A program made the position numbers and the translations under genes. This document shows, one piece after another, positions 43,701 through 46,953 of a stretch of 64,000 nucleotides of DNA. Origin of the DNA: Pocillopora damicornis. Its lineage: Eukaryota. The notes beneath the pieces are model-generated. The model saw nothing but the letters and a program-made list of their open reading frames with translations. It did not search any database and had not been told where the DNA came from. Positions within the stretch are counted from its first letter, which is position 1. Every line of letters starts with the position of its first letter. The stretch covers positions 310,001-374,000 of the forward strand of contig NW_020844672.1 in assembly GCF_003704095.1 (NCBI RefSeq). Direction: 5' to 3'.

Positions 43701-46700
43701 CATGCAACAAACATATAAATCTTGGTTTTCATATGCAAGAGGTTTAAAAAAAAAAAAAAACCTTGGTGATTATTCATCTGAGATATGCAAACACCTTATT
43801 TTGCTTCCAACCAACCACTGAACACTATCTGCTCTATCCTAACATGATATACTATTTATACTAACAATTTCAATGCAAAGGACAGTGAAGATTGGACTAT
43901 TATAGCAGATTTAGGGTGTTATTTCTGGTTTAAACTTCACACTCACGAAAGGTACTAAAGCAAGCAAAACTTGTTAAAAGCAATGACTTATGTTGAAAAT
44001 TTTCCAAACTGGTTAGGCGAGTGTTCTATTGGTAAACATAACAATACAACTGAAGATAACGTCTTACCAGCTAATAAAAATTCTGAAATTATTTTGTGGC
44101 TTTCACTGTCTGTAAATCACCATAAGTGGGCTTGGCTTCTCCTGGCCACAATTGTCCAAGTGTGCATAACAGATGGCGTATAAAAATTATTTAAACTCTT
44201 CAAATTTAAGAAAACAATGAAAACTGTTTATTTTGCAATCTAAGGTGTTTGAAAATGCTGTATATTGTTTTCCTGATCAGCGCCAAAAGTAATACCATTA
44301 ACAATTGATAACTCCAACAGGTTACAGTACAAAAACACTGTTCATTGCTTGAATTCCCCTGAATAATAGAATTTGTTGAAGTGTAATGCTAAAAAAAATC
44401 TTCCTGGATAAAATTATTGAAATGTTTTGAGCACTATGGAGTAGAACATGGTCAAAATGTGGTGCTTGTTTATTCAAGGGAAAAACAAAGTTAAATAATC
44501 ATTATTCGCAGATTTTATTTTGCTAACTGCATCAGTAACTCGTCAACTTGATGGAAAAATTCCCATGAGAACGATAATAACTCTTTAAGATTTAAAATCA
44601 ACCTTACCATGAAACAAAACATTCGGATTATATTTTAATTTCGCGACGAAACGTATAGGCATTCATCCAGTTGTTTGGTGACGCACATATTTATTTCTGC
44701 GACCAAATTAATGCTCCATTTTCGGCGCAAGCTTCCTACGTGCTCGTGTAAACAAAAGAACAGCAGTAGAACCTTACCGAAACAGAACTCCACGACAAAG
44801 GAGACGCGAACTAATATAAGCATCATGCGTGATATTAAGAAGAACGCACACCAAATACATGTACTAAGAGATCCGATTGAGTCGCTTGCATACGAAATAT
44901 TTACTTTCACAACCATTCTTTCTTGATAGGGCAAATGATAAAACAATTTGTATCGACTCCTCGTCGCCTTTGAAACTGGATCTATCCGACCTCCATAATA
45001 CAGAAGGTAGGAAACCCACTCAACCACGAAAATATATTCGACCTCGCAAGTTTAAACCCTTCAGAGTTGATTAAAAATAACTTCTGGTACGGAAAGACAC
45101 TAACACTCACGTTAAGTTTCAGGCGAGGGTTTTCTCGTTGAAGTCTATGATTTAAATTCGAGATTCGCTCCCACAATCTTCAGTGAAAACAGAAAAACTC
45201 CAAAGAACCAAATAGCTTAAAAGGCGGGGTATATGTAAAATGGCTGAAAGAACGACAGCAATAAATTTTGGAAAACTCACACATAAGGCTTTTAAATTGG
45301 AAATCTAAGACGAACTTCCAATAACACTCGTGAGCAGTGTATGACATCACATAAATAGAAGCTTCCATCGTGAAATTTCTTGCAAATAAAGGATTTGGAG
45401 TGTCCAAAAAATAACTATAGTTGAGCTAAAAATTTATAGGACCCCCCGGTACATCGGCGGGTCGAAGTCAACCTGGGCAGCTAAGTTGTACCTAATAAAC
45501 CTCATCAAGCCATGAAAAACTGACCTTTTGATACGATTTGCCACGCGAATTGAAACGTTCAGCGATACTATAAAAGCTAATACTACTAAGCTTCTCGAGG
45601 ACATTCAACGCCTCAGAAAGATAATGATATCTTTATTTGCAGTGAAGTTCTTTCGCTATTGCCTGTATTAATTGTGTAGCACTAATTTTAGATATGATCT
45701 GGGATGGGTAACCTACACATCAGCTGTTAAGTCACCATACGTTAAACCACGCTCATAAACACGCATACTCCAAATTCCGTGTGTTGAAAATATTTCACTG
45801 TCAATTTTCCCACAACATCGACAAACACACACACATATCAAATTCGAAGATAACCGAGCGCGTCAGTAACACTAACTTAATGGAAAGCACACCCCTTTCG
45901 TGTAACGAAAAGAAAAATTCAGCAGACTAAATTTGATATTAAATGTGAAGTAGAAAGAGCAATAAAAAAAAATAGAGTGGATAACAACAAACTTACGCTT
46001 GCATCGCCGACTGACTTTCGATAGTTCCGTTCACTTCCAGCGTCATTCTCCACGTAGTTTCGTCCTTCGTTGTACTTTTCTGTGATATATTGAGAAACTT
46101 CTCTTCCCCTGTCGTAAGAATAATCTCTCCCTCTTTGCAATTGCTCTTCTCCCCTCATCTCTTTTCGCGGCTGTTCTTCTTGACTGAAGTTTCTTTCGGG
46201 TGTGTAATACTCGCGTTTACCGTGATAAAATTCGTTATTATTATTTTCTCTCTGCTCAAAATCTCTAACTCTCTGAGGATTAGAATATCTTGGATAGGCG
46301 TCCCTTGGTTTGCCCTCTGAAAGAATACAGCAAATGCAAGCTGAAATTTGCGAAAATAACCGAGCAAGCACGAATTTCCTGAGCTTAAATAAACGTATGC
46401 AAGGACAGTCTAATTACAGTGTCATGACTCAAACCAATATAAACGCTGGAAAGGTTGTTTTGCATACATTAATAAATTCGTATCACAAAAAAACCTGCAT
46501 AAAAACAAAACCAATTGTCGCTTATTGAGAGAAAATTCATGAGTATAATTTGGGATAGCGTTCGAAGGCACAAACTTTGCAAAGCTTGTGCTTTGGCAAG
46601 CGTGTCGAGAGTTTTTAAATTTCCAGTGAGAGGACATCAATCGTTAAAAGCTTACCTAAAACCTCGATTTGTGGATTCTTGGCCCTTAACTTGGCTGCCA

Positions 46701-46953
46701 AGTGGGGATGCGAGTCTTCTAATGCCACACACAACTCTTGAAATCCAGTCGGACCCTTGTAATGGAGTAAGTCAAGCAAGCTTTCCGTACGTTCTTGAGG
46801 GGTCCGCCCAATGTTTATTCCATCGATTTCTTTCTGAGTCAGCACACCACTCACATACAACAGCGGACAAACTTCGTTAGTTCGAACGTCTCTCAGAATA
46901 AGGTCTCGATTTTCAAGCAAAGCACTTTGGTATGGCTTTAACGCCGCAGCCAT
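27148..46953 (-). CDS. TJP1: Tight junction protein ZO-1-like MAGUK, about 1710 aa in 30 exons: CARD-PDZ1-PDZ2-PDZ3-SH3-GUK-low complexity-ZU5-UPA
   Basis: Exons 46656-46953, 45997-46316, 42353-42400, 41552-41679, 40954-41056, 40517-40616, 39578-39681, 39065-39276, 38628-38698, 38139-38267, 37423-37579, 36973-37120, 36691-36793, 36529-36574, 35849-36019, 35055-35209, 34889-34945, 34643-34738, 34099-34193, 33736-33845, 33369-33475, 32986-33083, 32084-32236, 31727-31926, 30549-31538, 29580-29785, 29161-29304, 28587-28843, 28111-28254, 27148-27330 sum to 5133 nt in frame. Motifs [79 protein letters not shown]-1 identity is secure; joining of the first two exons is inferred from phase. Confidence 0.93.
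27356..27568 (-). mobile_element. TTAA-flanked piggyBac-like MITE, family A (last ZO-1 intron)
   Basis: Reverse-complement copy of 24819-25030 with intact TIRs. Confidence 0.85.
27655..27865 (+). mobile_element. Penelope-like terminal-repeat fragment with inverted duplication and a minimal hammerhead ribozyme core
   Basis: CTGATGA-C-GGGC-TTAC-GTTC-GAAAC-GTC-AG at 27709-27738; inverted partial copy at about 27673-27699; downstream sequence shared with 15157-15300 and 32385-32590. Confidence 0.7.
32385..32590. mobile_element. Palindromic copy of the same Penelope-like repeat
   Basis: CTGACGTTTCGACCGTTAGCCTTTCGCCAATCGCTCTGA...CTCTCCCACCGACGCAGCACC. Confidence 0.65.
34400..34600 (+). repeat. 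Interspersed repeat with CCAATCA/GATTGG motifs; diverged inverted relative near 50290-50480
   Basis: CTCTGTGATTGGTC...TTCTCAACCAATCAG...ACTAAAAC versus TTTTAGTTTTGAATCTGACTGGCTGAGAA. Confidence 0.5.
35371..35572 (+). mobile_element. Degenerate family A MITE
   Basis: ATCAGTATGCATATTCTCCATACTGTTCTCTATACATTTCC...GGGGTTAA. Confidence 0.75.
40215..40420 (-). mobile_element. TTAA-type MITE, family B
   Basis: Reverse complement of 21003-21211. Confidence 0.8.
42000..42229. repeat. Intronic tandem duplication, period about 126 bp, two copies
   Basis: CTTGAGGTGAGCCAATT...AACAATAGCATTAGAACTGGCCCATCAAGCACAAGTCTCTCACAAAGTA occurs twice. Confidence 0.9.
44608..44610 (-). other. Candidate alternative first coding exon of ZO-1 (Met only, ATG|GTAAGG)
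   Basis: Minus strand reads TTC ATG GTAAGG; phase 0 matches the acceptor at 42400; lies at the CpG-rich/CpG-poor boundary. Confidence 0.5.
46656..46953 (-). CDS. CARD-domain exon at the 5' end of the ZO-1 gene
   Basis: [12 protein letters not shown]...[15 protein letters not shown]...[36 protein letters not shown] fits the CARD pattern (R..L..., GVLT..E...I, LLD.L..KG...F..L..AL....PHLA); phase-1 donor GTAAGC matches the next exon. Confidence 0.88.

Follow-up and report, generated by a model that had tools for sequence, protein, structure and literature searches.

A CARD-encoding 5' end of the ZO-1 gene in the stony coral Pocillopora damicornis, a probable cnidarian member of a known isoform class

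In papers on the evolution of the MAGUK proteins, the ZO proteins are drawn without a CARD (PMC2859873, PMC1978500), and reviews of this evolution regard the CARD as characteristic of DLG5 and CARMA, while a CARD on ZO-1 is already to be found in bilaterian gene models and in one paper on the zebrafish. The zebrafish gene tjp1b possesses three alternative first exons, one of which provides the isoform ZO1b-Alpha with an N-terminal CARD (Michel et al., 2023, PLoS Genet, PMC10703405). This isoform occurs mostly outside neurons and was not present at the synapses under study, and its CARD has been assigned no function; the studied function is carried by the Beta and Gamma isoforms (PMC10703405). 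Here, we describe a locus of the coral Pocillopora damicornis within a window of 64,000 nucleotides (the whole stretch of DNA analysed, positions 310,001 to 374,000 of contig NW_020844672.1), in which a CARD exon, a charged exon and the first PDZ exons of a ZO-1 gene, all on the minus strand, are joined in a single spliced in-frame message. This locus is most likely the 5' end of the coral ZO-1 gene and represents, among cnidarians, the ZO-1 isoform that bears a CARD.

The distribution of CARD-bearing ZO-1 proteins among bilaterians is broad. The protein annotated as 'tight junction protein ZO-1-like isoform X5' of Branchiostoma floridae (P0021) combines a CARD with three PDZ domains, SH3, GuK and ZU5, and searches with the CARD regions of Branchiostoma floridae and Lingula retrieved CARD-bearing ZO-1 models from B. 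lanceolatum, Lingula anatina, dozens of teleosts and molluscs including Pecten, Octopus, Argonauta, Patella, Crassostrea, Mytilus, Mya, Physella, Lymnaea, Biomphalaria and others. A first-pass annotation of the window, made from the sequence, had taken vertebrate ZO-1, ZO-2 and ZO-3 to lack a CARD and had implied that the coral architecture was novel. The former is wrong in view of zebrafish ZO1b-Alpha (PMC10703405) and of the PF00619 matches on dozens of teleost ZO-1 isoforms; the latter gives way to the annotated CARD-ZO-1 models of teleosts, two Branchiostoma species, Lingula and many molluscs. The architecture is thus not new, and the coral gene is a cnidarian member of a known, little-discussed isoform class. 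As such, the advance is incremental. It consists in an RNA-backed CARD-ZO-1 from outside the bilaterians, in which the CARD may be at the main 5' end; no mention of a cnidarian ZO-1 CARD was found in the literature searched.

Compared with its closest relatives in architecture, the coral gene shares with zebrafish ZO1b-Alpha and other teleost ZO-1 proteins a CARD in the first coding exon, followed by a linker without a recognizable domain, PDZ1-3, SH3, GuK and ZU5. Equally, the CARD-ZO-1 proteins of Branchiostoma, Lingula and molluscs (e.g. P0021, P0123, P0252-P0270) have the same domain order. They differ in the segment after the CARD, which is a conserved coiled-coil stretch in these invertebrates, whereas the coral has an unrelated charged exon rich in Tyr, Arg and Glu; teleost ZO-1 is like coral ZO-1 in having no coiled coil at this place. 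In fact, a tblastn search of 41000-49500 with the first 300 residues of six ZO-1 proteins of the coiled-coil type matched the CARD and PDZ1 exons only and recovered no such coiled-coil exon. The coral and fish ZO CARDs are approximately 38% identical and find no supported grouping in a phylogenetic tree. In addition, fish produce the CARD form alongside two other isoforms with alternative starts, but in four RNA runs of the coral it supplies the sole 5' end seen.

The central evidence for the coral message comes from RNA. Thirteen RNA runs contain half or more of the words sampled from 45997-46953, a segment of which the exons make up approximately 64%; expression of the CARD region is widespread. 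Contigs of four runs from four studies (X1, X2, X6 and X3) were aligned to 41400-47200. In X1, X2 and X6, which represent three studies, one contig each (of 883, 5290 and 4061 nt, respectively) contains both the joint 45997/42400, which leads from the charged exon into PDZ1, and the joint 42352/41678, which continues into the PDZ1 core exon. The first of these joints skips 3596 nucleotides with CT..AC ends on the plus strand, equivalent to GT..AG on the minus strand, and the second skips 673 nucleotides, likewise with GT..AG on the minus strand; each is anchored by 49 letters on its shorter side. The long contigs of X2 and X6 start within the charged exon and extend 4-5 kb beyond PDZ1. The 45997/42400 junction that the first-pass annotation had proposed is hence present in contigs of three studies, while an ending of the CARD exons at a separate terminal exon, without ever reaching PDZ1, was not seen in the RNA contigs.

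The joint between the CARD exon and the charged exon, 46656/46316, is covered by shorter overhangs. The X1 contig that contains it has 28 letters on the shorter side, and the CARD contigs of X2 and X6 end at 46656 in 20 and 19 loose letters, respectively, which are the exact beginning of the charged exon. The overhangs are short because the contigs break at a polymorphism at 46276, where all four RNA runs have G instead of the A of the window and where X2 and X6 each possess two allelic contigs. As the same joints recur in X1, X2 and X6, the splice chain from the CARD via the linker to PDZ1 has been seen in three independent data sets, and the assembled contigs suggest that one molecule carries the whole chain from CARD to ZO-1. 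The random-primed run X3 contributed low-depth unspliced contigs only.

Reading of the exons confirmed the coordinates and phases proposed for the CARD exon (phase 1) and for the charged exon (phase 0, no stop, donor GTAAGT). With exon boundaries marked by a slash, the CARD exon closes with ...GAG GTT TTA G/GTAAGC, a phase-1 donor at 46656, and the charged exon opens behind ...TTCTTTCAG/AG GGC at 46316 in phase 1, whereby the frame is restored as G/AG for Glu. The frame then stays open through ...GAT GCA AGC/GTAAGT, and the exon ends at 45997 in phase 0. The receiving exon starts at 42400 with ...TTTTCCACAG/CCT TCA GAG CAG TAT GTA TGG and closes with AAG/GTGAGT at 42352. The coordinates of all features are collected in Table 1.

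Table 1. Features of the ZO-1 locus in the window, listed in the direction of transcription.
Feature	Position	Strand	Details
Non-coding 5' leader exon	48494..48689	minus	Found in at least one run; 3' end set by donor GACGAGACT/GTAAGT at 48494
5' untranslated part of CARD exon	46954..47001	minus	Acceptor ...GATTGACAG/G at 47002/47001
CARD-coding part, first coding exon	46656..46953	minus	ATG 46953-46951; 99 full codons plus one base
Intron 1	46317..46655	minus	339 nt, GT..AG
Charged Tyr/Arg/Glu-rich linker exon	45997..46316	minus	320 nt; phase 1 in, phase 0 out; donor GTAAGT
Intron 2	42401..45996	minus	3596 nt
First shared ZO-1 exon, start of PDZ1	42352..42400	minus	48 nt, 16 codons, phase 0
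PDZ1 core exon	41551..41678	minus	76% identity to amphioxus ZO-1 residues 221-258; E 1.2e-11
Remaining ZO-1 gene	28581..41550	minus	Exon-by-exon matches
PDZ3	36949-37128	minus	Match to amphioxus ZO-1
SH3	35845-36027	minus	Match to amphioxus ZO-1
GuK	32983-33857	minus	Match to amphioxus ZO-1
ZU5	29156-29772	minus	Match to amphioxus ZO-1 and Pfam
C-terminal part	28701-28847	minus	Match to amphioxus ZO-1

These joints bear on the question whether the CARD and charged exons are a small gene of their own, with the connection to ZO-1 arising as a rare read-through product or as a chimera of the assembly. Such a gene would be in line with the depth of the CARD-exon contig, which two runs show to be lower than the depth of the contig downstream (13 vs 97; 61 vs 150), and with a low-depth contig retaining intron 1, from which an open reading frame (ORF) of 112 amino acids with nothing but the CARD would result. 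However, contig depths are unfit for ranking the parts of a gene, both joints have exact GT..AG ends in the main high-depth contigs of three studies, and in these runs the donor at 45997 and the acceptor at 42400 are spliced to each other and to nothing else. Furthermore, strong purifying selection acts on the charged exon, which is free of stops and has a consensus donor at its end. We consider a separate gene highly improbable. The contig retaining intron 1, which belongs to X1 and covers 46289-46685 at a depth of 7 as compared with 235-277 for the spliced exons, is most likely pre-mRNA; its CARD-only ORF, if translated, would span 46615..46953.

At its 5' end, the CARD exon contains 16 in-frame codons with neither stop nor ATG ahead of the coding part. 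The CARD contig of X6 continues for 196 loose letters past 47001, the first 30 of which match 48494-48523 with one mismatch (0 chance matches expected), and the CAG/G acceptor at 47002/47001 pairs with the donor of this leader exon at 48494. The 5' end of the leader exon at 48689 is a lower bound taken from the length of the loose end. As the leader exon has a stop in the frame of the CARD and no ATG follows until 46953, the ATG at 46953 is the start codon. One contig of X2 continues unspliced as far as 47065, so a second start site is possible.

A different question is whether the CARD form is the main product of the gene or one of several isoforms, with a CARD-less ZO-1 from another promoter acting as the main junctional protein as in zebrafish. 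The precedent of three alternative first exons in this fish (PMC10703405) speaks for several isoforms, as do the unequal contig depths in X2 and X6 and low-depth RNA contigs at 44741-45169 within intron 2. On the other hand, the sole joint into the acceptor at 42400 comes from 45997, and no other 5' partner of PDZ1 was found in the four runs, in which contigs, however, drop rare variants. The contigs within intron 2, at 43061-43360 and 44741-45169, have a depth of 2-6 and are not joined to ZO-1 exons, and neither of the exons 42352-42400 and 41551-41678 offers an ATG ahead of PDZ1. A predominant CARD-less form in the coral is thus rather unlikely, though it deserves to be kept in mind. As a separate observation, one X3 contig departs at 44810 into sequence not found within 41400-47200.

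The domain encoded by the first coding exon was recognized as a CARD by the Pfam family PF00619 with 49.9 bits (cut-off 23.9; E 3.4e-13) over profile positions 2-83 of 85, in agreement with the assignment of the first-pass annotation. An AlphaFold2 model, for which 34 aligned CARDs served as input, has a predicted local distance difference test score (pLDDT) of 87.7 and six helices with the first one broken (residues 7-14 and 16-22, then 25-34, 40-47, 52-81 and 83-91). The model superimposes on the APAF-1 CARD with a template modelling (TM) score of 0.85 and a root mean square deviation (rmsd) of 1.2, and its best 50 matches in the Protein Data Bank (PDB) are CARDs or CARD-based designs. By sequence, the closest solved CARDs are a weak and mixed set of RAIDD, CARD11, CARD8 and APAF-1. 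The coral domain is a genuine CARD that, according to the model, is predicted to be well folded.

The two-exon module recurs in other corals or cnidarians, where the comparison covers the CARD and charged exons, as the contigs L001-L004, L016 and L017 end before the first ZO-1 exon. In a library of 1.84 billion representatives, the CARD exon has three close relatives of 90, 75 and 57% identity, all of which are short ORFs that read past the donor into the intron. In the coral contig L001, the CARD exon is followed by the acceptor TTTTCAG/AA and a charged exon that ends in .../GTAAGT; in L004, which contains the 57% relative, the charged exon differs in sequence but has the same phases and again ends in phase 0 at GTAAGT. 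Comparison with L001 gave ratios of non-synonymous to synonymous substitution rates (dN/dS) of 0.15 in the CARD exon and 0.09 in the charged exon, and the latter is 82% identical in amino acids to that of another coral. A Pfam search with the charged exon matched no family. By these comparisons, both N-terminal exons are under purifying selection as protein.

Downstream of the CARD exons, the gene could be followed by searches performed exon by exon or with database proteins, in which a contig coordinate minus 310000 gives the window position. PDZ1, PDZ3, SH3, GuK and ZU5 of the amphioxus ZO-1 (P0021) were matched in order on one strand, while PDZ2 was not matched on its own in the exon-by-exon comparison. 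The non-CARD domains of this protein have their best or sole ZO-type matches in the genome at C1307 339156-351676, which corresponds to 29156-41676 of the window. Pfam passes a PDZ domain (36949-37107) and ZU5 (two exons). By its domain content and best matches, the gene below the CARD exons is a ZO-type MAGUK of the TJP1/Polychaetoid type. Between GuK and ZU5, a single ORF of 341 codons (30545-31570, minus strand) contains the long disordered ZO-1 exon rich in Pro, Arg and Ser, which has no match in amphioxus ZO-1.

The first-pass annotation had called the product a CARMA/DLG5-like CARD-MAGUK. The junction of a CARD with a MAGUK holds, but the label is loose, as no coiled coil follows the CARD and a separate DLG5-like gene resides on another contig. 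DLG5 is, like coral ZO-1, a MAGUK with an N-terminal CARD; the DLG5 CARDs are the group nearest to the bilaterian ZO CARDs in the tree, with the motif K-G-x-x-x-F-x-x-F-C-x-A-L-E common to both. Unlike DLG5, the gene in the window has ZU5 and a ZO-type PDZ1. With spider DLG5 as query, matches to CARD, coiled coil (E 8e-58), PDZ and GuK were found on C211 and not in the window, which rules out the window gene as the DLG5 orthologue of this genome. The gene on C211 (100230-114781, minus strand) comprises a CARD exon at 114512-114781, an exon for a coiled coil of 430 residues, and PDZ and GuK exons. DLG5 has been reported absent from Nematostella (de Mendoza et al., 2010, PMC2859873), and against this report a DLG5-like gene in a stony coral merits attention.

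The CARMA proteins (CARD10, CARD11 and CARD14), considered together with CARD9, provide the second comparison. CARMA, like the product of the coral gene, is a MAGUK with an N-terminal CARD, and the coral CARD model fits the CARMA1 CARD with a TM score of 0.77-0.79. However, CARMA proceeds from the CARD via LATCH to a coiled coil and has a single PDZ and no ZU5, features which are all different in the coral gene; the charged non-matching linker, several PDZ domains and ZU5 rule out a CARMA or CARD-coiled-coil identity. CARMA is held to have originated in jawed vertebrates when a CARD9-like protein fused to a MAGUK of the ZO-1/Dlg5 type (PMC5978004). Furthermore, a MAGUK of the sponge Amphimedon with the order CARD-PDZ-SH3-GUK has been proposed as the ancestral form of DLG5, ZO and CARMA (de Mendoza et al., 2010, PMC2859873). 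Like coral ZO-1, this is a non-bilaterian MAGUK with a CARD; it is set apart, by its published description, through its one PDZ and its branching outside ZO. The coral CARD-ZO-1 fits the proposal of a CARD-bearing ancestor of DLG5, ZO and CARMA. The suggestion of such an ancestral state in the first-pass annotation accordingly agrees with the published view (PMC2859873), while the CARD tree leaves it unsettled.

This tree, which was calculated with IQ-TREE from 83 rows and 94 columns and supported by ultrafast bootstrap and SH-aLRT, bears on the question whether the coral and bilaterian ZO CARDs are of common origin. The bilaterian ZO CARDs formed one clade (99/96) beside the DLG5 CARDs, and the coral DLG5-like CARD was placed among those of DLG5. 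The four coral ZO CARDs, which are united among themselves (100/100), grouped loosely with caspase, APAF-1-like and other CARDs. In the approximately unbiased (AU) test, a single ZO CARD clade was not rejected, with p values of 0.122 for the 83-row set and 0.748 for a set of 137 rows; in the latter, the tree that holds the ZO CARDs together even surpassed a quick free search in likelihood. A further AU test with a p value of 0.0067 was discarded due to a mis-specified constraint, which kept only 8 named bilaterian ZO CARDs in one group with those of the coral, while 17 genomic fragments from within the ZO clade were excluded.

The structure of the exons offers a further comparison. In both coral and bilaterian ZO CARD exons, the initiator Met stands a few residues before helix 1, the whole CARD is contained in one exon, and a phase-1 donor follows helix 6 on a G; the bilaterian donor position was deduced from genomic fragments that read through it as G-K from G/GTAAG. 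An N-P pair nine residues past the P-H-L motif is equally present in both. Gene structure leans towards a single origin of the ZO CARDs, whereas the comparison of the linkers leans towards separate origins.

Several observations weigh against the locus as the cnidarian form of a CARD-bearing ZO-1. The RNA contigs, taken from Logan, are assemblies, and no single molecule was seen to span the message from CARD to ZU5. The overhangs of 28, 20 and 19 letters between CARD and linker are below a rule of thumb of 31 letters, though they are exact and have GT..AG ends. In the sole functional study, the zebrafish CARD isoform gave neither a phenotype nor a protein signal in the tissue examined (PMC10703405). 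With respect to the origin of the CARD, the maximum-likelihood tree places the coral CARDs outside the group of ZO and DLG5 CARDs, across a weak branch (84/80), and within the coral genome the amphioxus ZO CARD matches a caspase CARD on C905 best (E 2.6e-11), with the window CARD second (E 1.2e-9). Equally, the donor of the coral CARD exon is placed 5 codons beyond its bilaterian position, and the coral linker shows no relationship to the coiled coil that follows the CARD in ZO-1 of invertebrate bilaterians.

The latter points would be expected if the fusion were analogous rather than orthologous, that is, if a cnidarian ZO-1 had captured a CARD exon independently from one of the many CARD genes of corals. 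The grouping of the coral ZO CARDs with caspase and APAF-1-like CARDs and of the bilaterian ZO CARDs with DLG5, the failure of the reciprocal best match, the unrelated linkers and the donor offset all agree with such a capture. However, the branch that separates the coral CARDs is the weak one named above, the AU test retained the single clade in both data sets, and the larger one assigned the joined tree the higher likelihood. The tree, moreover, is based on 93-94 columns and four cnidarian sequences, and both CARDs share the position in the gene, the Met within the CARD exon and the phase of the donor. An independent capture is a minority view to which we give limited credence, and a common origin of the coral and bilaterian ZO CARDs is moderately favoured.

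The locus at C905 deserves a description of its own. Between 111500 and 121546, a CARD exon (121292-121546, minus strand) is located upstream of two tandem sets of ORFs for caspases (peptidase C14), with part of the region masked by N.

On the favoured reading, transcription of the coral ZO-1 gene begins beyond 47001, with the leader exon that ends at 48494 used in at least one run, and translation proceeds from the ATG at 46953. The message would encode the CARD, a charged linker of approximately 106 residues, PDZ1-3, SH3, GuK and ZU5. The arrangement of CARD and ZO-1 would date back to the common ancestor of cnidarians and bilaterians. CARDs make homotypic contacts in the pairs of APAF-1 and caspase-9, of CARD9 and BCL10 and in similar pairs. 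By analogy with these pairs, the CARD of coral ZO-1 may engage in a homotypic death-fold contact, and could thereby attract a further CARD protein to the junctional plaque or aid the self-association of ZO-1. The genome encodes candidate partners, among them the CARD-caspase on C905, the DLG5-like protein on C211 and several others, with additional CARDs located on C1619, C2633, C3172 and C1975. The coupling of epithelial integrity to caspase or NF-kB signalling that the first-pass annotation had suggested would be one conceivable outcome.

A more far-reaching proposal would be that CARD-ZO-1 is ancestral and the default in corals, with the CARD connecting the plaque of the septate junction to a CARD-dependent death or immune pathway by docking of a CARD-caspase or a BCL10-type adaptor, a connection subsequently lost in tetrapods and insects. 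If true, the junction itself would directly sense the loss of epithelial integrity; we regard this extended scenario as improbable. For finding the partner of the ZO-1 CARD, a cnidarian with a possibly dominant CARD form could be a cleaner system than the zebrafish, where this form is a minor isoform.

Beyond the ZO-1 gene, the next gene downstream (20093-23534, minus strand) has ORFs that resemble a leucine-rich cap domain of the tropomodulin/leiomodin type together with acidic N-terminal exons.

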